This document shows, piece after piece, positions 8,888-64,000 of a stretch of 64,000 nt of DNA (the stretch's first letter is position 1; every line of letters starts with the position of its first letter). Position numbers and translations under genes: made by a program. Source of the DNA: Basidiobolus meristosporus CBS 931.73 (lineage: Eukaryota > Fungi > Basidiobolomycota); NCBI GenBank assembly GCA_002104905.1, contig MCFE01000246.1, positions 51,142 through 115,141 on the forward strand, in the 5' to 3' direction. Under the pieces are notes generated by a model. It did no database searches. It saw only the letters and a program-made list of their open reading frames with translations, and was not told where the DNA came from.

Positions 8888-9236
8888 TGTTGTAAAAACT
8901 CGTATTTCCACCTAAATATTCACCTAACTTAGTCACTTAGATCATCACCTTCAAATCCTAGAGAATACTGACCAAATTCATTGTTGGGATTTACTTAGAA
9001 TATTTTCACCAAAATACCAGGTACCCAGAACATAAAAATTCTCAAAGTTGTCCAAACAGCCCCAAACTTTGCACACATGTTCTTGGGACCTTCCTTAACC
9101 TATTCCAAGTGTTTGTAATGCCAAGACCAGGTAAAAGTATAAATACTACTTTGACATTCAATAAATCATTAAGTGAAAAACACATAATCTACTTGTTCTC
9201 CAAATCACTTCCAATATCTCCAAGACTCTTACAACA
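8888..9236 (+). repeat. 5' LTR (349 bp)
   Basis: TGTTG...CAACA ends and TATAAAT at ~9138; 7 substitutions versus the 3' LTR, counted by eye. Confidence 0.97.
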
Positions 9237-9248
9237 GGTTATGAGCCC
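9237..9248 (+). promoter_or_regulatory. Primer-binding site GGTTATGAGCCC
   Basis: Directly follows the 5' LTR and resembles the GGTTATGGGCCC half-tRNAiMet PBS of Drosophila copia. Confidence 0.8.
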
Positions 9249-12200
9249 CGAGCTGTCATTCTCTGCAATGTCTACTACTGCTATTACTGGAATTTTTCCC
9301 TCTGCTGAAAAGTTGGATGGATCTAACTACCAAGTGTGGAAGGTGAAGATGAAGATGCTGCTACAAGAAAGAGGCCTTTGGGATATTGTCATGGGAGAAG
9401 AATGCCCTCCTAAAAACGTGGGAGAGGAAGCCTTAAAGTACCAGAAGAAAGAACAAAGTGCCTTTAACTGCATTTGCCTTAATGTCAAGGACAAATTGCT
9501 AATTCAATGCTCAAGAGCAAAAATGGCAAAAAATGCCTGGAAAGCATTGGAAGACACCTACCAGTCATGTTCAGCTGCCAAGAAAATGTATCTGAGAAGA
9601 AAATTCTTTACTACAAAGATGCTGCCAGGAGAAGAAATGAAAAATCTAATTAACAGAATTACCCTGCTGGTAGATGAGATGGAATCTGAGGGCGTACCAA
9701 CTACTGATGAGGATGTGATAGTTACCATCCTGAATAGCCTGACAGACGAGTTTCAGGGCCTTGTATCTGCCCTAGAGTCCAGAACTGAAGATTTGACCTT
9801 AAATTAAGTATATGGAAGGCTCCTGGATGAAGAATTAAGAAAATCAAGCGCCAATAAGAAGGAAGAAGAAAATGCTTTAATAAGCAATGATAACCAACAA
9901 AGGAGGTACCAAGACCCTACAAAGGCAACAGCAACCTATCTTGCAACTACTGCAAAAGGAAAGGACACACATCAGACCGGTGTTTCAAAAAGAAAGATTA
10001 TCAGCAAAAGAAGCCTGAAAATGGAAATGCTGCAACAACTGAAGATAGACTATTCATATCTGCACTAAATATGACCACAAACAAGGATTCTCAGATGTGG
10101 TATATTGACTCTGGAGCTTCTCAACACTTTACACACCAAAAAGAACTTTTTACCCAATATCAAGAAATTCCAATTAAGAAGGTTTTCATGGGTGACGATA
10201 GAATACTTGATGCAGTGGGAGAAGGAACTATCCAAGTAAACCTTAGAAGCAGTGAAGGAAGCCATACACTGACCTTTAAAGAAGTACTCTATGTGCCAGA
10301 AATAGCCAAGAACCTACTCTCTGTAAGCAAGGCCACAGCAGAAGGACTCAGTTTCAGTTTTGACAATTCTGGATGCAGGATCACTGATCAAAATGGTGCT
10401 CATATTGCTTTGGGCATCAGAGATCAGAATCTATACAAGTTGACTTATATTCCATCATATCTGGAAGCCAATTTAAGTAACTTAAATGAAGAAACACCAA
10501 TGCTTTCGCACAGGAGATTTGGACACATCAATTTTGATTATTTGCGCAAAATGATCAAAGATCAGCTAATTTCTGGAGTGAAAATTGATCCCCCAGCTAA
10601 TTTGGAGCACTGTGAAGCCTGCATATATGAGAAACAAGCCAGACAACTGTTCAAGAGCTCTGGGTTAATCAAAACTAAGAAAAAATTAGATCTCATTCAC
10701 TCAGATCTATGTGGACCTATGCAAAATTTATCCTTAGGCGGGATGAAGTATTTAATCACTTTTATTGATGATTATACAAGATACACATGGGTCTACTTCA
10801 TGGAGAAAAAGGAAGAAGCTCTGTCTAAGCTCAGGGAGTTTAAAGCCATGGTGGAGAGAGAAACTGGTGAAAAAATCAAGAAAATACGCTCTGACATTGG
10901 TGGGGAATATACCTCAAAACTCTTCATCCACTTCTGCAAAATTCATGGGATAAAGCAAGAGACTACTGTACCTTACTGCCCACAGCAAAATGGAGTAGCA
11001 GAACAAGCTAACAGATCAATAATTGATATGGCAAGATCTATGATCCATGATCAAAATTATCCTATGATTTTTGGGCGGAATCAGTTGCCACTGCTGTATA
11101 TCTTAAAAATAGGAGTTATAACAGAATACTTTGTGATTCTACTCTATTTGAAGCATGGTATGGATACAGACCAAGTGCAGAACATCTAAGAATATTTGGG
11201 TGTACAGCATATGCCAAAAAACTGGCCGGAAATCAGTCAAAATTTGAGCCAAAAAGTGTAAAATGCATATTTTTGGGCTACTGCAATGAGAGTAAGGCAT
11301 ACAGACTCTACAATACCGAAGCAAAGAAGCTGATCAAGTCCAGGGATGTGTTGTATGATGAAGATTCAAAATTTTCACAAAAAATGACATCAGATGATGA
11401 CAAAAATTTGATCTCAAGTCCACCAATTGTCAGGATTGAATCAGAGCAAAACAATGAAAATTTTTTCACTCCAGAGGACTCTACAACCGTGGTTTAGCCA
11501 GAATCAGTGCCCAGGAATATCCCAGAAGTGATCATTCCAGTATCAAATGCCCGGAGATCCAATCGGACAAGAAATAGCCCAAATTACTATATTAATGAGG
11601 GTACAAACTTAGCCTATGCCTATTCAGTCCATATTGATGAACCCCAGACTGTAAAAGAGGCCCTAAATAGCCCTCAGATGAAGTTTTGGAGATCTGCAAT
11701 GACTGAGGAATATCAGGCCCTGATGGAAAATCAAGCTTGGGACCTAGTCAAATTACTAATCAACCAAAAATCAATTGGATGCAGATGGGTCTTCAAGACA
11801 AAATACAAGGCTGATGGTACAATTGAAAGATACAAAGCAAGACTTGTAGCCAAAGGTTACTCTCAAACAAAAGGACTTGACTATACTGAGACCTTTGCAC
11901 CGGTAGCCAAGTTTAATTCCATCAGATTAATATTGGCTATTGCAGCCAAATATAAGTTTTTTATTCATCAAATGGATGTAAAAACTGCATTTTTGAATGG
12001 AGAACTTGATGAGGACGTGTATATGGACCAGCCTGATGGGTTTGTTGACCAAGATAACCCCCATTTGGTCTGCAAGCTTAAAAAGTCACTATATGGTCTC
12101 AAACAATCACCAAGAGCCTGGAATTGCAAGATAGATTCTTATTTGGAATCTTTGAGTTTCAAAAGGAGTAATGCTGACTATAGTATATACCATAAGCCAG

Positions 12201-13212
12201 ATAGAGCAAATCCAGTTCTATTAGCTCTATATGTGGATGATCTTATTATAGCCGCCAATAACCCAGAAACATTGGAAGAGACTAAATCCAGCCTATCTAA
12301 GGAGTTCAAGATGTCCAATCTAGGAGAACTTAGTTACTACTTAGGGATTAAGTTCTCCATAAACAGAAGTACCCAGACTATTACCCTAAGCCAATCCAAG
12401 TATAATCAAGATATACTAAAGAAGTACAAAATGGAAGACTGTAAACCGGCAGCTACTCCAATGGAGACAAACCTTAACTTGGTCAAAACTCAACCAAATC
12501 AAGAGAGCTTGGTGCCATCTGAAAGCCCTGACTTTCCTTATCAATTGATGGTTGGCAGTCTGATGTATATCATGCTTGGAACACGTCCAGATATCTCATA
12601 TTCAGTGGGAGTTGTCAGCCAACATAATCAGAACTATGGATCTGATCACATTGCAGCAGTTAAGCGGATTTTTAGATACCTAAAAGGAACTGCTGACATC
12701 TGCTTAAGATACACTTATAAGGATTCAGAACAGGATCTTGTGGGATACTCTGATGCTGATTGAGGACAAAATTTGGAAGACAGAAGATCCACCACAGGAT
12801 ACACCTTTCTTTACTGTAAAGGAGCAATTTCATGGAATTCAAGAAAGCAACCAACCATAGCACTTTCTACTACAGAGGCAGAGTATATGGCAGCCTGTGA
12901 AGCTACAAAAGAAGCAATGTGGTTAAGAAAACTCTTTACAGATTTAGGCCTATGTCAAAAAACGCCTATTACTTTATTTCAAGATAATCAAGTATGAATA
13001 CAATTAGGTAGAAATCCAACTTTTCATGCTAGAACCAAGCACATAGATATTGGACATCATTTCATACATGAAGCTATAGAGAATAACTTAGTTAGCTTAG
13101 TTTACTGTTCTACAGATGAAATGATTGCAGACATATTTACCAAACCATTAGCTAGAGACAAGTTTGAATATCTTAGGTCAAAATTAGGACTAGTCAGTAT
13201 GAACATTTAGCT

Positions 13213-13221
13213 GAGTGGGAG
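13213..13221 (+). promoter_or_regulatory. Polypurine tract GAGTGGGAG
   Basis: Immediately precedes the 3' LTR. Confidence 0.8.
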
Positions 13222-13570
13222 TGTTGTAAAAATTCGTATTTCCACCTAAATATTCACCTAACTTGGTCACTTAGATCATCACCTTCAAATCCTAGAGAAT
13301 ACTGACCAAATTCATTGTCGGGATTTACTTAGAATATTTTCACCAAAATACCAGGTACCCAGAACATGAAAATTCTCAAAGTTGTCCAAACAGCCCCAAA
13401 CTTTGCACACATGTTCTTGGGACCTTCCTTAACCTATTCTACGTGTTTGTAATGCCAAGACCAGGTAAAAGTATAAATACTACTTTTACATTCAATAAAT
13501 CATTAAGTGAAAAACACATAATCTACTTGTTCTCCAAATCACTTCCAATATCTCCAAGACTCTTACAACA
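13222..13570 (+). repeat. 3' LTR (349 bp)
   Basis: Direct repeat of 8888-9236, followed by the TSD GATTT. Confidence 0.97.
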
Positions 13571-14420: not shown

Positions 14421-16356
14421 GTAGAAGCATAAATCAGCTATTGCAAGAATGCCACTAGTTGCTCAACAACCTGTCCTGAGTTATATAGAGAGCACTAAGT
14501 ATGTTGTATGGAAATATATAGTGCTGGGACAGGTGCAACAAGTGAACAGCCAGCAGCAACAAAGCCACTGCTTGAATGTTTGTCAAGGAACAAATGCAGT
14601 GCAATGCAAGATGTATCTATTCAAGGTGGCAGCAATGGTGCTGGCAAGACCAGAGGGAAAAGGAAAGGGAAGAAGCCCCACACCAGAGGGAAAAAGGAAT
14701 GCACCAGAGAAATGCCATGGTTTGCATATATCAGAATCCCAACATAGCCCTCAACAATTACCAAGGAGATAACAGTTACCTTGGCAAGAGATTGGAGATC
14801 CATGAAGTGTACGAATTTTTCGGAGCACAGGTTTGGCCAACAACAGGGCGGATCTGGGAAGGACTGTGGAGGGTGGTGCACGGGGTTTGGGGTGGCTTAG
14901 ACAAGCTTGAAGGGATTGACGAGTTCCAGGATATTGCGGAATCAATGCATCGGTCACAATCATACCCGCCATATTCAGGGCCAACCTAACCTGAATTCGG
15001 GATTTGCCAAGACGAAACTGAAGAGACCGGAGTGGTTAAAGTAGTGTACCGTGCGATTGTTGATTTGGATGGCCGGAAGAGTCACATGATGCTCACTAGT
15101 TCGCTGGAGACCGGATGAAGTGTTTGCGTGTTTGGAAGAACTTGGACGAACCAAGGATGAGAGTGCTTGAAGAGAGGTCCCAGGAAGGGATGGGCAAAGT
15201 GTGGGGGAGGGGGGGGGGTCTTTGGGATCATTTCCGGGACTTCCCTAGTATCAAGAATTGGCAGGTATCTATCTACAAGTTGAACCCCAAAAGGCGGTGG
15301 TTCATGATTCAGCGATGATCCAAGAAGCCAACGAGGTGAATGGATGTATTGCCCGAATACTCCGGGGCATTTTGGCAAACCCCATCGGATGGGCATGGTA
15401 CATGGGACTACCTGTACCGCGTCCATAGGGATATCTACCTGGGTCACCGATTAGTCCTCTGGAGGCCTTGGAGATTGTTCGACGAAATGCCCGTGGTCAG
15501 CCCACCTCGTCAAGCCTAAGGGACACCGCTTTTCACTGTAGATGTGGGGATACGATGGGTGCCGCATGGCCTCCGGAGCACACCTATCCGAGGGAAGATG
15601 CGGAGTGGTGCCCACTGGATACCAACGCGAGGAGAGATAGGGATTCGAAGTGATTCGTTGACAGGATGCTTTTCCGATGCAGATCTGGTGGGCCAAAGCC
15701 AGGGAGGTATGTTCGAGGTAGAATGTCCAGATACCTACAACGAGGAGGGAGGAGGGAAGACAGTGCGAGACCTTGGAGTGGGTTCCGCCGGGTGGGTGAT
15801 CAGCAGGGGACCACCATGAAAACGGAGATCTTCCCCGGGGTCCCACTGGTCAGACGAGCCCAGCGAATGCTCCGGATCGGTTAATTCTTTGAAAGGCGCC
15901 CACTCACCAAACTCTCCAAATACACACACCTCACTTCGTGGACCTAAAGGAGGTACCGATCAGTGGAGGGATTAAGCAGTCACATCAGCCACTCCGTGCG
16001 CATTTCGATTGGTGATCGGCGCCACACACACCCCCCCCCACGGTGCGGTCGGTCCAGGGCCCGTACGGGATGGTGGAGTGGTGGCCAGGGCCAGGGTCAG
16101 ACGACGAGCCCGTCGTGTGCGACACCGTGAGAGGCGGCCAGAGGAAATGGGCCGCTGTCTGGGGCGTGAACCATTCGCACGACCGGTGGTAGGGCTCAAC
16201 CAGCTTTGGGATTTCACTTCATTTCATTCTATTGACACTGCATTGGGAAACTACGTATTTGACAGTTGGGGCGGGGGCGGGGGCATGGGGAATTTGGAAT
16301 ACAATGGAGAGGAGGGGGGGAAGACTCTACAGGAAGGGTTCGGAAGGGGTGACTGT

Positions 16357-16392
16357 AGGGTGAGGGTGAGGGTGAGGGTGAGGGTGGGGTAG
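16357..16392 (+). repeat. (AGGGTG)n hexamer tract, G-quadruplex-capable
   Basis: agggtgagggtgagggtgagggtgagggtggggtagg. Confidence 0.85.
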
Positions 16393-16797
16393 GTGTTTGT
16401 ATTTATGCATGTGTTCGGATTCGTGGGTGCGGGCGTGGTGAGTTTTGCGCTGGCTTGTGGGTTGGCGAAGATGTGTATGATAAGTGTGGCGAAGGGGGGG
16501 GGGTTGGGCATGAACGCAAAAGGGCCATCAGCTGACCAGGCGGATGGGTGGGGGCACAAGGTGAAGTAATATAGGCTAATCGGTTCGCCAGGTAACAACA
16601 TGACCGCGGGATAGATAGATCGGAGGAGGAATTCAAAGCAAGTCCCTGAGAATCGGTCCATATACAGGGGAGGACATGGGTTCGGGTTCAGCACGTGGGT
16701 GGTGTCTTTCCACCGAGTTAAGAATGGTAGGTTGAGGGGGTGGGATGGAGGAGCAAGGGCCAAAGGTTGGTGGGACAGGGGTCTCCCGAACGGACCA

Positions 16798-34016: not shown

Positions 34017-34578
34017 AACAAACAATAACTGTGAAGCGAGTTGGCAGGATATTTCTAATTTTATATCATTGATGGTCTGAATCCAGTGGCCGCTAGCATC
34101 ATCGTTTTTGACCGAGAACTTGATCTAGAAAAGTGATGTGGTCACTTGATACGGTATTCACTTGAGAGCATATACATTAGGATGGATTCCTGTACAATTC
34201 TATATATATATATACTGGGATTCCATTGATGTAATGCTGATCGGCCACACTGATGGAACATGACTCAGCAGAGCATGTTATGCGTATACCAATGTGTTTC
34301 CCAAGCATAATAAACCCAGAGTCAGCATGACTCCAATATACCAGACTCCAGATACGTGTTTAAATGCTTTTATTACTGGTGAAGTGAGTGGAAAATAAAC
34401 AGAATGAATACTTGGTTTTAGGAACGGAGAAGCGTGGGTAATCATGAGACTTCTCCGAATATGGCAGCCATCTGCACTTGAAAGTGAAAGGGAGGGTGAG
34501 GGTGAGGATGAGGGTGAGAGATATGGAGTGGGAGTCATAGGCCCAGAGTGATCTATGTTGCAACAATGATAGAAATGC

Positions 34579-53919: not shown

Positions 53920-54365
53920 TGTTGTAAACATTTGCAATTCCACCTGATTATTTACCTAGCTTAGTCACTTAGATCATTACCTTCAAATCCCAGGAAATAC
54001 TGACCAAACTCCTTGTTGGGATTTACTTTGAATCTTTTCACCAAAATACCAGGTACCCAGATCATCAAAATTCTCAAAGTTGTCCAAACAGCCCCAAACT
54101 TTGCATACATATTCTTAGGATCTTCCTTGGCCTATTCTAAGTGTCTCTAATCCTATGACCATGTAAAAGTATAAATACTACTTTTACATTCAATAAATCA
54201 TGAAGTGAAAATCACATAATGTCCTTGTCCTTCCAATCACTTGCCATATCTTCAGGACTCTCAAAACAGGCTATGGGCCTCAAGCAGTCACTCTCTGCAA
54301 TGCCTACTACTGCTATACAGGAAGCTTTCCCTCTGCTGAAAAGTTGGATGGATCTAACTACTTCA
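53920..54365 (+). mobile_element. Copia 5' LTR (53920-54268) with PBS GGCTATGGGCC and a gag stub
   Basis: Diverged homolog of 8888-9330. Confidence 0.85.
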
Positions 54366-55577: not shown

Positions 55578-55918
55578 TGTTGTAAGGGTCTTGGAGATAT
55601 TGGAAGTGATTTGGAGAACAAGTAGATTATGTGGTTTTCACTTAATGATTTATTGAATGTAAAAGTGGTATTTATACTTTTACCTGGTCTTGGCATTACA
55701 AACACGTAGAATAGGTTAAGGAAGGTCCCAAGAACATGTGTGCAAAGTTTGGGGCTGTTTAGACAACTTTGAGTATTTTCATGTTCTGGGTACCTGGTAT
55801 TTTGGTGAAAATATTCCAAGTAAATCCCAACAAGGAATTTGGTCAGTATTCTCTAGGATTTGAAGGTGATGATCTAAGTGACTAAGTTAGGTCAATATTT
55901 AGGTGGAATTACAAGTTT
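55578..55918 (-). repeat. Young Copia LTR truncated ~8 bp short of its terminus by telomeric sequence
   Basis: Close reverse-complement match to 13222-13570. It ends ggaattacaagttt then AGGGGGG, instead of the expected ..ttacaaca. Confidence 0.9.
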
Positions 55919-55925
55919 AGGGGGG

Positions 55926-57341
55926 AGACAGTCACCAACAGGTGAAATCTTTATTTCAGTTGAAACAAAGAAGCCAGCGCTACTGTTGTAGCTTTGATAC
56001 AAGAGTGTGTAGCTGAGGGGAATTTGTAGGTAAGCTAATAAGAAGTGATGATAGTTCTTCAGTGCTCAAGACACTGTTCAGTGGGAAGGGGGGTAGCAAG
56101 AGAGGTAAGAATGACTTGTGAACAACATTAATGAGGGGAATGTGATAAGGATTGATATTCATCATAAAGGGAGTGTGCTGCTGCAGATATTGCTGCCAAA
56201 GGTCTGTCAAGTACTTCAGGTAGGCCAGCTTGGGTTTTTCTGACTGCAGAATAAATTCAGCAAACTTCTTGACTTCAGGATCTCCAAGTATAGTTCTCCA
56301 GCAGGAGCCAGGTGTTGTGTGGTGTGTTCTCTTCCAGGCCTTAATCAGTGGGTTGTTGCAGTTGTGAAGTCTGCGGTATAATCTGGTTCTAAGGTAGAGA
56401 AGTCTGATCTTATAGGGCATAAACCCAAAAGCACCAAGAATAGCATGTCTGTAGGGGCATTCAGGCAAATGAGGCACCAAGGAGGTAATGCACCATACTG
56501 CAAACTTGTCAAGCTTAGTGCAGTCTCTAGAAGTAAGAGAGAGAAGTGGTAAGCCAAATTCCAAGACAGGGAAGACAAACTGCTTGAGTAGAAGAAGGCA
56601 GCTGGGAGCTGAAGTTGTAGGAGGAGTAACAGCCAGTAGCTTGTGGAGTGCCTGTCTTGCCAGGATAATTCTCTTCTTCAGGTGTGCTCCAGAGTCTAGT
56701 CCAGTAGGAAGGAAAGGAAAGCCAAGATATGTAGCAGAAACCTGAGCAGGTAGAGTGGAGTTCTCCAAGTTGATGGGAGAGCCCAAAGGTACTGTCTTTG
56801 CAATGGAAAGCTGGAGATTATTCTTCTGCAGATACTGGTGGATGGTCTGGGAGTCTTGTTGCACATTGGAGGAGGATATTCTGATGTCATCAGCAAAGAG
56901 AGTAACCAGGCAGTCAGCTGAGAGTCTTGGGAAATCATTCAGGAAGATGGCAAACAGTATAGGACCAAGCACAGAGCCTTGAACCACTCCATTAGGAACT
57001 GAGAACACTGGTGATTGCTCACTTGGGTGCAGAATTCTTGCTTGTGGATCCAGAAACAGGGACCTGACAAGGAGGGTGAGAGAGGTACTGGAAAAGCATT
57101 GCAACTTGGACCAAAGCAGATTTCTGTCAACTGAATCAAAGGCCTTAGTAATATCAAACAGAACTGAGGGATACTTGCACTGGAGAGAGTGATCTTGGCT
57201 AAGTATGACTGCATATTCCAAGGAGAGGCCAGGAACAAAGCCAAACTGTGCAGGATGAAACTTGAGGGAGTCAGAGTAGAGCTCCTGAGCAAGCAGAAGC
57301 TCAAACACCTTTCTGCAGGTGGGCAGCAGAGATATTGGCCT
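55926..57341 (-). mobile_element. Telomeric LINE copy L1, 5'-truncated within RT
   Basis: ORF 55980-57308 with QFGF, FDITKAFDS, GVVQGSVLGP, FADD and YLG; flanked by TTAGGGGGG and GGGTTAGGG. Confidence 0.95.
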
Positions 57342-57355
57342 GGGTTAGGGGGGGG

Positions 57356-58771
57356 AGACAGTCACCAACAGGTGAAATCTTTATTTCAGTTGAAACAAAG
57401 AAGCCAGCGCTACTGTTGTAGCTTTGATACAAGAGTGTGTAGCTGAGGGGAATTTGTAGGTAAGTTAATAAGAAGTGATGATAGTTCTTCAGTGCTAAAC
57501 ACACTGTTCAGTGGGAAGGGGGGTAGCAAGAGAGGTAAGAATGACTTGTGAACAACATTAATGAGGGGAATGTGATAAGGATTGATATTCATCATAAAGG
57601 GAGTGTGCTGCTGCAGATATTGCTGCCAAAGGTCTGTCAAGTACTTCAGGTAGGCCAGCTTGGGCTTTTCTGACTGCAGAATAAATTCAGCAAACTTCTT
57701 GACTTCAGGATCTCCAAGTATAGTTCTCCAGCAGGAGTCAGGTGTAGTGTGGTGTGTTCTCTTCCAGGCCTTAATCAGTGGGTTGTTGCAGTTGTGAAGT
57801 CTGAGGTATAATCTGGTTCTAAGGTAGAGAAGTCTGATCTTATAGGGCATAAACCCAAAAGCACCAAGAATAGCATGTCTGTAGGGGCATTCAGGCAAAT
57901 GAGGCACCAAGGAGGTAATGCACCATACTGCAAACTTGTCAAGCTTAGTGCAGTCTCTAGAAGTAAGAGAGAGAAGTGGTAAGCCAAATTCCAGGACAGG
58001 GAAGACAAACTGCTTGAGTAGAAGGAGGCAGCTTGGAGCTGAAGTTGTAGGAGGAGTAACAGCCAGTAGCTTGTGGAGTGCCTGTCTTGCCAGGATAATT
58101 CTCTTCTTCAGGTGTGCTCCAGAGTCTAGTCCAGTAGGAAGAAAAGGAAAGCCAAGATATGTAGCAGAAACCTGAGCAGGTAGAGTGGAGTTCTCCAAGT
58201 TGATGGGAGAGCCCAAAGGTACTGTCTTTGCAATGGAAAGCTGGAGATTATTCTTCTGCAGATACTGGTGGATGGTCTGGGAGTCTTGTTGCACATTGGA
58301 GGAGGATATTCTGATGTCATCAGCAAAGAGAGTAACCAGGCAGTCAGCCGAGAGTCTTGGGAAATCGTTCAGGAAGATGGCAAACAGTATAGGACCAAGC
58401 ACAGAGCCTTGAACCACTCCATTAGGAACTGAGAACACAGCTGATTGCTCACTTGGGTGCAGAATTCTTGCTTGTGGATCCAGAAACAGAGACCTGACAA
58501 GGAGGGTGAGAGAGGTACTGGAGAAGCATTGCAACTTGGACCAAAGCAGATTTCTGTCAACTGAATCAAAGGCCTTAGTAATATCAAACAGAACAGAGGG
58601 ATACTTGCACTGGAGAGAGTGATCTTGGCTAAGTATGACTGCATATTCCAAGGAGAGGCCAGGAACAAAGCCAAACTGTGCAGGATGAAACTTGAGGGAG
58701 TCAGAGTAGAGCTCCTGAGCAAGCAGAAGCTCAAACACCTTTCTGCAGGTGGGCAGCAGAGATATTGGCCT
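57356..58771 (-). mobile_element. Telomeric LINE copy L2, 5'-truncated at the same base as L1 (period 1430 bp)
   Basis: ORF 57410-58738; same junction cct-GGGTTAGGG-GGGGG as L1. Confidence 0.95.
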
Positions 58772-58785
58772 GGGTTAGGGGGGGG

Positions 58786-61700
58786 AGACAGTCACCAACA
58801 GGTGAAATCTTTATTTCAGTTGAAACAAAGAAGCCAGCGCTACTGTTGTAGCTTTGATACAAGAGTGTGTAGCTGAGGGGAATTTGTAGGTAAGTTAATA
58901 AGAAGTGATGATAGTTCTTCAGTGCTAAACACACTGTTCAGTGGGAAGGGGGGTAGCAAGAGAGGTAAGAATGACTTGTGAACAACATTAATGAGGGGAA
59001 TGTGATAAGGATTGATATTCATCATAAAGGGAGTGTGCTGCTGCAGATATTGCTGCCAAAGGTCTGTCAAGTACTTCAGGTAGGCCAGCTTGGGCTTTTC
59101 TGACTGCAGAATAAATTCAGCAAACTTCTTGACTTCAGGATCTCCAAGTATAGTTCTCCAGCAGGAGTCAGGTGTAGTGTGGTGTGTTCTCTTCCAGGCC
59201 TTAATCAGTGGGTTGTTGCAGTTGTGAAGTCTGAGGTATAATCTGGTTCTAAGGTAGAGAAGTCTGATCTTATAGGGCATAAACCCAAAAGCACCAAGAA
59301 TAGCATGTCTGTAGGGGCATTCAGGCAAATGAGGCACCAAGGAGGTAATGCACCATACTGCAAACTTGTCAAGCTTAGTGCAGTCTCTAGAAGTAAGAGA
59401 GAGAAGTGGTAAGCCAAATTCCAGGACAGGGAAGACAAACTGCTTGAGTAGAAGGAGGCAGCTTGGAGCTGAAGTTGTAGGAGGAGTAACAGCCAGTAGC
59501 TTGTGGAGTGCCTGTCTTGCCAGGATAATTCTCTTCTTCAGGTGTGCTCCAGAGTCTAGTCCAGTAGGAAGAAAAGGAAAGCCAAGATATGTAGCAGAAA
59601 CCTGAGCAGGTAGAGTGGAGTTCTCCAAGTTGATGGGAGAGCCCAAAGGTACTGTCTTTGCAATGGAAAGCTGGAGATTATTCTTCTGCAGATACTGGTG
59701 GATGGTCTGGGAGTCTTGTTGCACATTGGAGGAGGATATTCTGATGTCATCAGCAAAGAGAGTAACCAGGCAGTCAGCCGAGAGTCTTGGGAAATTGTTC
59801 AGGAAGATGGCAAACAGTATAGGACCAAGCACAGAGCCTTGAACCACTCCATTAGGAACTGAGAACACAGCTGATTGCTCACTTGGGTGCAGAATTCTTG
59901 CTTGTGGATCCAGAAACAGAGACCTGACAAGGAGGGTGAGAGAGGTACTGGAGAAGCATTGCAACTTGGACCAAAGCAGATTTCTGTCAACTGAATCAAA
60001 GGCCTTAGTAATATCAAACAGAACAGAGGGATACTTGCACTGGAGAGAGTGATCTTGGCTAAGTATGACTGCATATTCCAAGGAGAGGCCAGGAACAAAG
60101 CCAAACTGTGCAGGATGAAACTTGAGGGAGTCAGAGTAGAGCTCCTGAGCAAGCAAAAGCTCAAACACTTTTCTGCAGGTGGGCAGCAGAGATATTGGCC
60201 TGTAGGAGCTAGGATCCAGGTGCTTTCCTTTACCCTTGTACAGTGGCAGAACATTTGCAAAGGACCATTCCTCAGGAGTAGAAAGCTGGGCTGAGCATTG
60301 CTGAAACAGTGGAAGCAGAAGTGCAGACATGGCCTTGGTACTAGTCTTCAGAAGCTCATAGGAGATTGTGTCCACACCTGGAGCAGTAGAGTTGGGAAGC
60401 CTCTTGAGCACATTATGGATTCTCCTTTGATCAAGTGCAAGTGGGATGGGCAGAGTCTTGAAGTCAGGATGAAAGCCAGGAGTTGAGTACTGCTTTGTAG
60501 AGAAGAAGATGTTAGCCAGCTGTTCTGTTGAAGGTAACTTCCTGGAAGAGGGCCTCATTGCTCTGTAGAGTCTTGATACTGTTCTTGTTATAGAGTTGGA
60601 AGATTGCAGAGGCAAAGAACTCATAATATGATCCCAGAGCTGAGTATGCAGAGTGTGGTGAATTGCCTTGGAGTGGTGTATTGCTGTCAGGAGGAGTTTC
60701 TCTGTTTTTGGGTTAGGGAAACTCAGGTAGCTTTGTTGCAGGGCTGAAACAATGGATTCCCATTTTCTTGAGGTAACAGCAGTAGTCTTGCATGGCAGTG
60801 AGAGGGAGGCAGACACCAGAATCAGATGCTTCACAAAGAGCCAGGCATAGTTGAGATCATCTGGCAGAGAAAGTAGCAAACTGGCAAGCTTCAAGTAGTT
60901 CCCAAAGTCTTTCTTCTGATACTTGGTAGCTTTGTGGGTGAGCACAGTAAGTTTTGGCAGCTTCTTCTTCACAACTGGTTGCATAGAAAGGGACCAGGCT
61001 GAGTGGTCAGAGGCTCTCAAGGATCCTAACTCAGCTCCAGAGAATTGCTTAACTTCATTCACAAAGTAGAGGGCAGCAGCAGAAGGGCAGATCCAGTCAA
61101 CACATCTTTTCTCAGATTGAGCACCTAGTGCTAGCAGGTGGCTTTCTCTCAGGAAGTTCAGTAGGAATGTAGACCTTGGCTTCATTCTTGCAGTCAGAGT
61201 AGTCTTGTTCTCAGGATGGGGAATGTTGAGATCTCCAAGCAAGATAACAGGTGTTGATATAGATTGCTGGTATTGCTGAACCTTCTGGCATATAACTTGC
61301 ACTTCCTGAAGGGCAAGACTTGGAGGCAGATAGCAGAGCACCAGACTGATAGTTGGCAACTGGAGAGCAGCACAGTAAGGGGAGTAAAGAGGAACACAGA
61401 GCTGAGGAGTATTGATGGTAGAAGAGATGAAGCAGATAGAGGAGGTATTCTTTGTTCTAGGAGTAGAAAAGCAATATAGATTAGTCAAAAGTATAGAAGG
61501 TAGCTGAACATCAATCAAACACAGGAGGGAAAATCTTGAAAGAAGTCCCTCTAGAGTTGGTCTTGATGGCTGTATGCTGTTGCAGTTAAGCAACAGAACT
61601 TCAGGTAGTCAGGCAGAGGTTGTAGCTTCTTCAGAGGCAGCATTGATAATGTGACCTGCAGAGTCCCAGAGCTCTTCAAATGGTGCATCACTTAAGTCAG

Positions 61701-62089
61701 CAAGGAGGGAAATGGCATGATTCTTGAGGAAGTATGCCACATCATAGGAGGGGGCTTGTCTCTTGATGGCAGCAAAGAAAGACAGAATGGCAACATGGGC
61801 TGGAGGCTTGTTGAACAGTAGAGAGTCAGAGGATTCAGATTCTTCAGGCACTATCTTGAAGTCAGTTTTCAGCCAGTTAAGGTTCTTCTCCACAAAGGCA
61901 ACAAATGGGTCAGCAATGTTTTGGTCTAGGATAACCTCCAGAATCTTCCCTTTTCTCCAGGCCAGGTTGACAATTCTTGAGAGCTGAATATTGCATGCCT
62001 TGAGTGCTTTCCTGATGTTTGAAATGGGAGTCCAGGGAACTTGCTTCAAGTACACCACAGTCCAGGTAGAAGCTGGTGGTAGGTTTGCT
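58786..62089 (-). mobile_element. Telomeric LINE copy L3, longest copy (ORF1 C-terminus plus APE-RT ORF2), truncated within ORF1
   Basis: Carries ORF2 58840-61608 and an ORF1 frame that stays open to the telomeric junction; no poly(A) tail. Confidence 0.95.
58840..61608 (-). CDS. LINE ORF2: AP-endonuclease plus reverse transcriptase
   Basis: APE motifs LLNCNSI, YLPP, GDLN, VDW and SDH. RT motifs APGVD, YRPISLL, QFGF, FDITKAFD, QGSVLGP and FADD. First AUG only at 61185. Confidence 0.93.
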   Translation of the reverse strand, partial: LPEVLLLNCNSIQPSRPTLEGLLSRFSLLCLIDVQLPSILLTNLYCFSTPRTKNTSSICFISSTINTPQLCVPLYSPYCAALQLPTISLVLCYLPPSLALQEVQVICQKVQQYQQSISTPVILLGDLNIPHPENKTTLTARMKPRSTFLLNFLRESHLLALGAQSEKRCVDWICPSAAALYFVNEVKQFSGAELGSLRASDHSAWSLSMQPVVKKKLPKLTVLTHKATKYQKKDFGNYLKLASLLLSLPDDLNYAWLFVKHLILVSASLSLPCKTTAVTSRKWESIVSALQQSYLSFPNPKTEKLLLTAIHHSKAIHHTLHTQLWDHIMSSLPLQSSNSITRTVSRLYRAMRPSSRKLPSTEQLANIFFSTKQYSTPGFHPDFKTLPIPLALDQRRIHNVLKRLPNSTAPGVDTISYELLKTSTKAMSALLLPLFQQCSAQLSTPEEWSFANVLPLYKGKGKHLDPSSYRPISLLPTCRKVFELLLAQELYSDSLKFHPAQFGFVPGLSLEYAVILSQDHSLQCKYPSVLFDITKAFDSVDRNLLWSKLQCFSSTSLTLLVRSLFLDPQARILHPSEQSAVFSVPNGVVQGSVLGPILFAIFLNNFPRLSADCLVTLFADDIRISSSNVQQDSQTIHQYLQKNNLQLSIAKTVPLGSPINLENSTLPAQVSATYLGFPFLPTGLDSGAHLKKRIILARQALHKLLAVTPPTTSAPSCLLLLKQFVFPVLEFGLPLLSLTSRDCTKLDKFAVWCITSLVPHLPECPYRHAILGAFGFMPYKIRLLYLRTRLYLRLHNCNNPLIKAWKRTHHTTPDSCWRTILGDPEVKKFAEFILQSEKPKLAYLKYLTDLWQQYLQQHTPFMMNINPYHIPLINVVHKSFLPLLLPPFPLNSVFSTEELSSLLINLPTNSPQLHTLVSKLQQ

Positions 62090-62091
62090 GG
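61609..62091 (-). CDS. LINE ORF1 (gag-like) C-terminal part, lacking a start codon
   Basis: Frame is open from the telomeric junction (PANLPPASTWTVVYLKQVPWTPISNIRKALK..) to the TGA at 61609-61611. Confidence 0.7.
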   Translation of the reverse strand, partial: PANLPPASTWTVVYLKQVPWTPISNIRKALKACNIQLSRIVNLAWRKGKILEVILDQNIADPFVAFVEKNLNWLKTDFKIVPEESESSDSLLFNKPPAHVAILSFFAAIKRQAPSYDVAYFLKNHAISLLADLSDAPFEELWDSAGHIINAASEEATTSA

Positions 62092-62138
62092 GGGTTAGGG
62101 TTAGGGTTAGGGTTAGGGTTAGGTTTGGGTTAGGGGGG
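62090..62138 (+). repeat. Interstitial telomeric tract with variants
   Basis: ggggg(ttaggg)4ttaggtttgggttagggggg. Confidence 0.95.
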
Positions 62139-62655
62139 AGGAAAGTCACCAAGTGGTGAAATCTTTATTTACTTATGACAAGTATCTAAAGAAGCCAAGT
62201 TAATCTGAAGTAATTCCTAGAAAGCTAGGTCTGAGAGATATCTTCCTGGTAAGCCAGGTCTGAGAGTTGAGAAGCTGAGTGGTACTATATTTCCTAGTTA
62301 GCTAGGTCTGAGAGAGGTTTCCTGGAAAGCCAGGCCTGAGAAGTGAGAATCTGAATATATCTGAGCTAAGTTATACTGGTTTGCAGTAGCTAAATTGTGG
62401 CCGGAGTGGCCAGTAGACTGGGGGAACTGAGATGAATTTCTGGGCGATCACTGGCCAAATTTACTAGGCAAATCTGGCCAATTAGCATTTCAAGGATTTC
62501 AGCCAATCAGAGCCTTTACTTTGCCCGATGGTTGATCAAGCCATCTCCCAATGAGCACACATCAATTTATTAATCAAATTTTGCTGGATCCAGGATTTGA
62601 ACCCACCACCATGGGTATGGAAGGGTTAGGGATAACCACAAGGCTAAGTGTTCTT
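62139..62655 (-). mobile_element. Non-coding SINE-like element: tRNA-like head, four-hairpin array and LINE-like 3' tail
   Basis: A-box-like TAGCCTTGTGG (62646-62636) and B-box GGTTCAAATCC (62603-62593) at tRNA spacing. The 3' tail shares AAATAAAGATTTCACC-N4-GGTGA with the LINE. Both sides are flanked by telomeric repeats. Confidence 0.75.
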
Positions 62656-62670
62656 GGTTAGGGTTAGGGG

Positions 62671-62730
62671 ATGATCATCACCAAAGGGTGAAATCTTTAT
62701 TTAAATAAAGAAGCCAAGTTTGAATATGAA
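62671..62730 (-). mobile_element. 60-bp 3'-end stub of a related SINE/LINE family member
   Basis: tcaccaaagggtgaaatctttattt..aaagaagccaagtt, between GGTTAGGGTTAGGGG and TTAGGG. Confidence 0.8.
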
Positions 62731-62739
62731 TTAGGGGGG

Positions 62740-63855
62740 AGACAGTCACCAACAGGTGAAATCTTTATTTCAGTTGAAACAAAGAAGCCAGCGCTACTTT
62801 TGTAGCTTTGATAGAAGAGTGTGTAGCTGAGGGGAATTTGTAGGTAAGTTAATAAGAAGTGATGATAGCTCTTCAGTGCTCAAGACACTGTTCAGTGGGA
62901 AGGGGGGTAGCAAGAGAGGTAAGAATGACTTGTGAACAACATTAATGAGGGGAATGTGATAAGGATTGATATTCATCATAAATGGAGTGTGCTGCTGCAG
63001 ATATTGCTGCCAAAGGTCTGTCAAGTACTTCAGGTAGGCCAGCTTGGGTTTTTCTGACTGCAGAATAAAGTGAGCAAACTTCTTGACTTCAGGATCTCCA
63101 AGTATAGTTCTCCAGCAGGAACCAGGTGTTGTGTGGTGTGTTCTCTTCCAGGCCTTAATCAGTGGGTTGTTGCAGTTGTGAAGTCTGAGGTATAATCTGG
63201 TTCTAAGGTAGAGAAGTCTGATCTTATAGGGCATAAACCCAAAAGCACCAAGAATAGCATGTCTGTAGGGGCATTCAGGCAAATGAGGCACCAAGGAGGT
63301 AATGCACCATACTGCAAACTTGTCAAGCTTAGTGCAGTCTCTAGAAGTAAGAGAGAGAAGTGGTAAGCCAAATTCCAGGACAGGGAAGACAAACTGCTTG
63401 AGTAGAAGGAGGCAGCTGGGAGCTGAAGTTGTAGGAGGAGTAACAGCCAACAGCTTGTGGAGTGCCTGTCTTGCAAGGATAATTCTCTTCTTCAGGTGTG
63501 CTCCAGAGTCTAGTCCAGTAGGAAGGAAAGGAAAGCCAAGATATGTAGCAGAAACCTGAGCAGGTAGAGTGGAGTTCTCCAGGTTGATGGGAGAGCCCAA
63601 AGGTACTGTCTTTGCAATGGAAAGCTGGAGATTATTCTTCTGCAGATACTGGTGGATGGTCTGGGAGTCTTGTTGCACATTGGAGGAGGATATTCTGATG
63701 TCATCAGCAAAGAGAGTAACCAGGCAGTCAGCTGAGAGTCTTGGGAAGTCATTCAGGAAGATGGCAAACAGTATAGGACCAAGCACAGAGCCTTGAACCA
63801 CTCCATTAGGAACTGAGAACACAGCTGATTGCTCACTTGGGTGCAGAATTCTTGC
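62740..63855 (-). mobile_element. Telomeric LINE copy L4, 5'-truncated and directly capped by the telomere
   Basis: ORF 62794-63822; the element sequence cttgcttgtgg switches to cttgc-TTAGGG. Confidence 0.95.
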
Positions 63856-63873
63856 TTAGGGTTAGGGTTAGGG

Positions 63874-63914
<41 letters not shown>

Positions 63915-64000
63915 GGTTAGGGTTAGGGTTAGGGTTAGGGTTAGGGTTAGGGTTAGGGTTAGGGTTAGGGTTAGGGTTAGGGTTAGGGTTAGGGTTAGGG
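63856..64000 (+). repeat. Terminal telomere (TTAGGG)n with one TTTAGGG variant at ~63892
   Basis: Uninterrupted hexamer run to the end of the window, G-rich strand on +. Confidence 0.98.

Follow-up and report, generated by a model that had tools for sequence, protein, structure and literature searches.

Retroelements listed as telomeric are either LINE-type or Penelope-like only (PMC10088271). Those described at fungal telomeres (MoTeR, FoTeR, and Cnl1) belong to the CRE-like group with a REL endonuclease (PMC12857005, PMC7367193), and thus use another type of endonuclease than APE. LINEs specific for telomere repeats include TRAS/SART of Bombyx, Zepp of Chlorella, GilM/GilT of Giardia, and Tx1_Acar of Anolis (PMC10088271), and these insert into telomeric repeats as does the LINE of the Basidiobolus locus described here. 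A literature search, with most subscription journals outside its scope, found no telomere-specific SINE, no SINE partner for TRAS/SART, Zepp, GilM/GilT, or Tx1_Acar, and no report of a telomeric LINE/SINE pair in fungi. SINEs inherit the habits of their partner LINEs. SINEU-3 elements mobilised by Tx1 LINEs are a case in point, in which a SINE has the target specificity of a sequence-specific LINE (PMC4494074). Since target-specific SINEs of this kind exist, the principle is established, and what is new in the Basidiobolus SINE is its telomere niche; SINEU-3 differs from it in targeting a DNA transposon family or snRNA genes, in having an snRNA-derived head, and in not being telomeric.

The Basidiobolus locus carries a real, repeated, telomere-embedded SINE with boxes of the tRNA-gene type and a LINE-type tail. 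The stringent LINE/SINE pairs of eel (UnaL2/UnaSINE1) and zebrafish (ZfL2) (PMC4176376, PMC3747384) likewise have a short, non-coding SINE with 5′ A and B boxes, a unique body, and a 3′ tail copied from the partner LINE, and a conserved stem-loop in that tail is recognised by the LINE protein. The Basidiobolus SINE differs from the UnaSINE1 type in targeting telomere repeats rather than dispersed sites, and it ends with a C-run and CTAA that merge with the CCCTAA repeats, not with short A-rich or simple repeats. Target-site duplication is impossible to score. Its head has also lost the cloverleaf and contains a telomere-like motif.

Among fungal elements, the closest analogue is MoTeR2 of Pyricularia (Magnaporthe) oryzae (PMC7367193), which is likewise non-autonomous and resides in TTAGGG telomeres beside an RT-encoding partner, MoTeR1. 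MoTeR arrays are also arranged head to tail with short telomere tracts between the elements, and telomere-like sequence derived from MoTeR itself also separates copies within the arrays (PMC8381367). However, MoTeR2 is 1.7 kb long, lacks Pol III boxes, and has 860 bp of its 5′ end as well as 77 bp of its 3′ end in common with MoTeR1; because of the shared 860 bp it is an internally replaced derivative of its partner and not a SINE, whereas the Basidiobolus SINE has only the tail in common with its LINE. The partner of MoTeR2 has a REL endonuclease (CRE/SLACS-like), in contrast to the APE-type endonuclease (a weak match) of the Basidiobolus LINE. The HeT-A/TART/TAHRE elements of Drosophila (PMC4700185, PMC5537684) likewise form a telomere-dedicated non-LTR consortium with 3′ ends toward the centromere, and HeT-A is likewise an abundant member without RT that depends on the RT of another element. 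Unlike the SINE, HeT-A measures 6 kb, codes for Gag, depends on Pol II for its transcription, and ends in a poly(A) tail. Telomerase is also missing in Drosophila, whereas the Basidiobolus elements are separated by TTAGGG tracts, which implies that telomerase is active.

Organisation of the chromosome end

The window, as the whole 64-kb stretch of analysed DNA is called here, closes on its plus strand with 24 TTAGGG repeats, so that its end is the end of a chromosome (Table 1). It also contains an SDHA gene with 89% identity to SDHA of Mucoromycota and Zoopagomycota, from which the host is an early-diverging fungus. Along the minus strand, going inwards from the telomere, the terminal 8 kb consists of a truncated LINE, a 61-nt fragment, a 15-nt repeat, the SINE, a 44-nt tract, a full-length LINE, and two further truncated LINEs, followed by the subtelomere. 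The stacked elements lie on one strand throughout with their 3′ ends pointing to the centromere, and the orientation of the SINE is that of the five LINE-type copies in the window. The earlier note had proposed a SINE that targets telomeres, and insertion into the telomere is borne out by the repeats on both sides of the window copy and by the fixed phase in which its 3′ end is joined to them.

Table 1. Features at the chromosome end, with positions in the window.
Feature	Position	Strand	Basis
Terminal telomere, (TTAGGG)24	63856–64000	+	TRF
5′-truncated LINE copy, distal to the SINE	62732–63855	-	sequence
5′-truncated fragment of a third element type, 61 nt, with variant tail	62671–62731	-	sequence and tail alignments
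Remnant of telomere repeat, CCCCTAACCCTAACC, abutting the SINE 5′ end on its upstream side	62656–62670	-	sequence
SINE-like retroposon, full-length, non-coding, 523 nt including the terminal C-run	62133–62655	-	sequence
Head of the SINE: A-box, B-box, T-arm-like hairpin, no cloverleaf	62585–62655	-	box statistics, tRNA tests, fold
Telomere-like CCCTAACCCT in the head, between the boxes, 24 nt from the 5′ end	62622–62631	-	sequence
Body duplication, 62354–62288 against 62278–62211, 84% identity	62211–62354	-	self-BLAST, fold
LINE-type tail of the SINE: CTTGGCTTCTTT box, hairpin 1, hairpin 2, C-run; 67 nt	62133–62199	-	alignments, folds
Interstitial TTAGGG tract, joined by the SINE 3′ end on the centromere side	62092–62135	+	TRF and sequence
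Telomeric LINE, apparently full-length	58781–62090	-	ORF1 149 aa, ORF2 917 aa
LINE ORF1	62058–61609	-	
LINE ORF2, adjoining ORF1	61593–58840	-	

The ORF2 product of the window LINE matches the reverse transcriptase family RVT_1 (E = 3e-25) and has a weak match to an APE-type endonuclease (E = 4e-4); no Pfam family match was found for the ORF1 product. The two truncated LINE copies on the centromere side (55915–58775) are each 1430 bp long, 99% identical, and have their 5′ truncation point and their junction (CCCTAACCCA followed by GGCCAATATC) in common, and by these shared ends they look like a tandem duplication generated by recombination rather than two independent insertions. GC skew on the plus strand is strongly positive (0.21–0.33) between 56000 and 64000, so the sense strands of the stacked elements are G-poor and C-rich.

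Head, body, and tail of the SINE

The minus strand from 62655 reads AAGAACACTTAGCCTTGTGGTTA, CCTTCCA, and GGGTTCAAATCCTGG in order, as first described. The 3′ limit of 62139 given at that time omits the terminal C-run, and because a C-run plus CTAA closes every tail the SINE end is set here to 62133. All three parts of the SINE architecture that had been claimed are present: a head with promoter boxes, a unique non-coding body, and a LINE-type tail. The length is within the size range of SINEs (less than ~700 nt), and no ORF of at least 60 aa lies inside the element.

The A-box TAGCCTTGTGG (62646–62636) has a single mismatch to the consensus TRGCNNAGTGG, at the equivalent of A14, and the B-box GGTTCAAATCC (62603–62593) fits GGTTCRANNCC. 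The A-box starts at SINE nucleotide 10, both boxes are within the first 63 nt, and their starts are 43 nt apart; the equivalents of T8 and G53 are separated by 44 nt. These box readings and the T8-to-G53 distance agree with the earlier note. The pair is the only one of its kind on either strand of the 64-kb window, with none found in 100 Markov-2 simulations and ~0.006 expected per window from single-site frequencies. By motif, the 5′ head therefore contains a putative internal Pol III promoter, from which we infer that the SINE is transcribed by Pol III. The sense strand was also correctly said to lack any run of four Ts (T4), a property with a chance of 0.04–0.06 by shuffling for the 517 nt considered; past the element, T4 first occurs 606 nt downstream, at position 61533. 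The SINE end lacks a Pol III terminator, and the RNA 3′ end must consequently arise in another way.

The head had been described as tRNA-derived, and this holds for the promoter boxes and the pairing of the T-arm but fails for the cloverleaf and for any match to tRNA models. ARAGORN predicts no tRNA in the window, and with thresholds relaxed on the element it returns one spurious call on the opposite strand. Rfam searches at E ≤ 10, of both 3 kb and 121 nt, give no match to tRNA, 5S, 7SL, or snRNA families, and report chance snoRNA and CRISPR matches only. When stem pairs are counted by hand in the tRNA register set by the boxes, the acceptor stem has two of seven, the D stem none of four, the anticodon stem one of five, and the T stem four of five, two of the four being G-U. 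The folding energy of the head equals that of shuffled sequences (z = -0.13). What the head retains is the set of loop positions that form the promoter (T8, G10, C11, G18, G19, and G53–C61). By ARAGORN, Rfam, and the stem counts, the head is not recognisably homologous to a tRNA. In SINEs, A/B-box promoters at tRNA spacing are almost always inherited from tRNA genes, which favours tRNA descent, and on balance the head would seem to derive from a tRNA gene. An origin from tRNA-Gly(TCC), weakly suggested before, is unsupported, as it depends on seven letters (CTTCCAT) that have no flanking stem and overlap a telomere-like run.

That run is where the anticodon arm would be, which reads TCCCTAACCCTT and equals 1.7 telomere repeats. 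A telomere-like 10-mer in any phase is expected ~0.003 times in 517 nt by simple arithmetic. Among contigs laid on the SINE no common variant is listed at CCCTAACCCT, and from these alignments the motif appears to be a feature of the family.

The body is not featureless, and self-BLAST reveals an internal duplication of 68 nt (Table 1). Four 5-bp hairpins with 4-nt loops are predicted, with stems that alternate between CCUGG/CCAGG and CCUAG/CUAGG; the arms on the 5′ side and the loops are similar to TGGCTT in the tail box. The body region as a whole folds no better than shuffled sequences (z = +0.6).

The tail matches all of the LINE tails in the window, as had been proposed. A 16-mer within it (AAATAAAGATTTCACC) occurs six times in the window, each time in an element tail, versus 0.04 expected. 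The tail module has a constant order: a GGCTTCTTT box, a variable spacer, AAATAAAGATTTCACC, 4–5 variable loop letters, GGTGA, a few further letters, the C-run, and CTAA(CCC). It is common to three element types in the window and to related LINEs of other samples (P0001–P0005; 48–80% protein identity). All six tails in the window have the C-run plus CTAA on the same strand, and the related LINEs elsewhere end likewise. SINE and LINE tails fold into the same two hairpins, the first built on UCUUU/AAAGA at its base, with AAUAAA in its variable top, and the second of the form UCACC-NNNN-GGUGA; the tops vary between elements and the stems persist. The LINE tail folds far better than shuffled sequences (z = -4.0), and the longer SINE stretch has no such excess (z = -1.2). 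The motif AAATAAAG is invariant across all tails, and since AAUAAA makes up the 3′ strand in hairpin 1 this invariance may be structural and not that of a polyadenylation signal.

Compared from AAATAAAG up to the C-run, the SINE tail has five differences from the window LINE and three from a second LINE family (P0005 type), which is represented in other samples by L001:441–527 and by the 3′ end of L012, and whose ORF2 is 48% identical. Because the SINE tail is slightly closer to it, the partner of the SINE may be a LINE of the P0005 type, by a small margin. The P0005-type tail (CTTCTTTAG..., GGTGACTTTCC) is the closest match found to the SINE tail. The ten contigs with related LINEs (L001–L008, L011, and L012) contain no SINE copy beside the LINE, and their similarity to the SINE is confined to the tail.

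Copies of the SINE in sequencing runs

Aside from its tail the SINE is single copy in the window, with no second copy within the 64 kb. It is nonetheless a repeated family, which refutes a single-copy reading, and DNA contigs from the source organism contain it at high copy. Four runs were analysed by mapping their Logan contigs on 61600–63850, and in one of these, a DNA run of the source organism (X2), 12,874 contigs map to the 2.25 kb. Summed contig depth in X2, which is not equivalent to copy number, is 0.45–0.82 million over the SINE, 0.70–1.43 million over the 3′ part of the LINE, 0.19–0.36 million over its 5′ part, and 0.05 million in the telomere-tract bin. At each of four positions (62385, 62392, 62406, and 62607) there are 39–47 distinct contigs that carry a letter other than that of the window copy, so the window copy departs from the family majority there, and these are the only common positions at which it does so.

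The 61-nt fragment at 62671–62731 is also repeated in X2, with a summed depth of ~121,000. Its hairpin loop is CTTT and is followed by GGTGATGATCAT, a third variant of the tail. The fragment probably represents the 3′ end of a further family of telomeric elements.

The 5′ end of the SINE is fixed. Both here and in other copies it forms a junction of CTAACC with AAGAACAC, positioned directly after LINE tails, and joints from 62659–62663 to 62731–62735 place a LINE tail plus CTAACC ahead of the head in other copies. The family also includes 5′-truncated copies joined to LINE tails, starting at six positions (62164, 62168, 62175, 62184, 62413, and 62487) and with different filler letters (G, GGG, TAGGGTTAG, GGTTGGG, and CTTAGG). 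The differences in truncation point and filler indicate that the truncated copies came from separate events, and such variation, as read from the contigs, is a mark of repeated target-primed reverse transcription. Restriction to telomeres is seen in the window copy and in the junctions of mapped contigs, which are with LINE tails or telomeric letters.

The SINE is also found in three 2025 runs labelled as other organisms or samples, with identities of 91–97% (X5), 93% (X6), and 99% (X8). LINE pieces in X6 are only 83–89% identical, and no LINE piece mapped in X5. The search for RNA evidence listed only two runs, X5 and X6, which may be of RNA or of DNA, and their cover of the SINE is of low depth and is not interpretable as expression. 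A scan of JGI metagenomes with a 21-nt query spanning the B-box returned two contigs (L009 and L010) that share only 22 nt, have no tRNA and no telomere repeats, and say nothing about homology. Both contain what looks like an unrelated SINE-like sequence of another organism (L009:1540–1625 and L010:840–925) in which 22 letters are identical with the SINE head and the T-arm CCAGG TTCAAAT CCTGG is perfect, and in which ARAGORN finds no tRNA.

Proposed mobilisation, alternative explanations, and other repeats

The reading that we favour, and hold to be probable, is that the window element is a full-length copy of a SINE family with a telomere niche, which moves by a four-step mechanism involving Pol III and a LINE acting in trans. 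Judged from the boxes and their spacing, both tRNA ancestry and Pol III transcription are likely. The type-2 promoter (A-box plus B-box) would position the Pol III start ~9 nt upstream of the A-box, and with no T4 inside the element the polymerase would read the whole SINE and continue into the flanking CCCTAA repeats. The LINE reverse transcriptase would then bind the tail hairpins in trans, as happens in pairs of the stringent type, the tail module being shared by the two elements. At the third step the C-run and CUAA(CCC) of the RNA 3′ end would pair with the G-strand, and reverse transcription would be primed on telomeric DNA, either at a nick made by the endonuclease (APE) or at the natural 3′ overhang. 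Priming on the telomeric G-strand would leave the head facing the chromosome end and the tail facing the centromere, which is the orientation observed, together with the junctions. Telomerase would finally add TTAGGG onto the cDNA end, and the next element could stack on top.

A more speculative role can be proposed for the telomere-like motif of the head, which we put forward as a doubtful extension of this mechanism. The motif CCCUAACCCU resembles a telomerase template and is 24 nt from the RNA 5′ end, where it might write a GGGTTAGGG seed near the new terminus, which would recruit telomere-binding proteins or telomerase and re-cap the end. The LINE and SINE would then constitute a self-capping extension system beside telomerase, and not only a parasite. 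If the favoured mechanism is correct, a chromosome end can house a complete ecosystem of parasites, made up of LINEs, their truncated relatives, and a SINE, in a host still relying on telomerase, and would provide a tractable counterpart to Drosophila HeT-A/TART. It would also raise the questions of Pol III transcription inside telomeric chromatin, of how an RNA 3′ end able to pair with the G-strand is formed, and of whether the telomere-like head motif aids re-capping.

The SINE could alternatively be a non-autonomous telomeric retroposon that is mobilised via its LINE tail and is not a Pol III-transcribed, tRNA-derived SINE, with Pol II or read-through RNA as its source and a 3′ end generated by AAUAAA. 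That neither ARAGORN nor Rfam detects a tRNA, that the cloverleaf stems are missing and the head folds as shuffled sequences do, and that no terminator is present at the SINE end all speak for such an element; the invariant AAATAAAG of the tails could equally reflect Pol II transcripts ending at AAUAAA, and head-to-tail stacking on one strand makes read-through geometrically possible. However, A and B boxes at tRNA spacing located exactly at the 5′ terminus are very unlikely to occur by chance, the T4-free sense strand is what a Pol III unit needs, and a 5′ end fixed across numerous copies argues for a defined start site. The AAUAAA is moreover part of a hairpin 1 strand and is perhaps conserved for structure, and we regard this explanation as unlikely. 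The differing 5′ truncations and filler letters of several SINE copies weigh against a second alternative, in which copies arise mainly by unequal exchange or break-induced replication in telomeric arrays and the SINE is a relic that spreads in array units. The two adjacent 1430-bp LINE copies with the same truncation point and junction do suggest recombination of this sort, and such expansion is documented for MoTeR arrays (PMC8381367, PMC7367193), but the SINE is 91–99% conserved in runs with other labels, above the LINE coding sequence in X6, and the window copy differs from the majority at just four common positions. Recombination as the main source of copies is accordingly improbable, although by analogy with MoTeR (PMC8381367, PMC7367193) it could explain some of the copy number.

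The least probable explanation, and one to which we give almost no weight, is that the SINE is the 3′ part of a longer LINE subfamily, either a UTR or a transduced flank, or else a chimera of the assembly. The shared LINE tail and the presence of only one copy in the window are compatible with it. The earlier note had recognised that its proposal would fall if the sequence were the 3′ UTR of a longer LINE, and this is ruled out by the joints in contigs, since elsewhere in the family the head comes immediately after LINE tails or telomere repeats, and in many contigs it is connected at 62655–62663 straight to a LINE tail. No similarity to LINEs outside the tail is found in the window, nor in 10 related loci, and runs from other samples contain the SINE.

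Repeats of other types are found further from the chromosome end. Short repeats of the GGGTGA type, which resemble variant telomere repeats, are present deep inside the window at 16340–16405 and 34476–34529. In the interval 8888–13521 a Ty1/copia-type LTR retrotransposon, with Pol_BBD, rve, and RVT_2 matches at 10071–12760, lies between two direct repeats of 300 bp, which have 98% identity and a spacing of 4334 bp. A third copy of the 300-bp repeat, with 88% identity, is located at 53920–54219, near the telomeric array.
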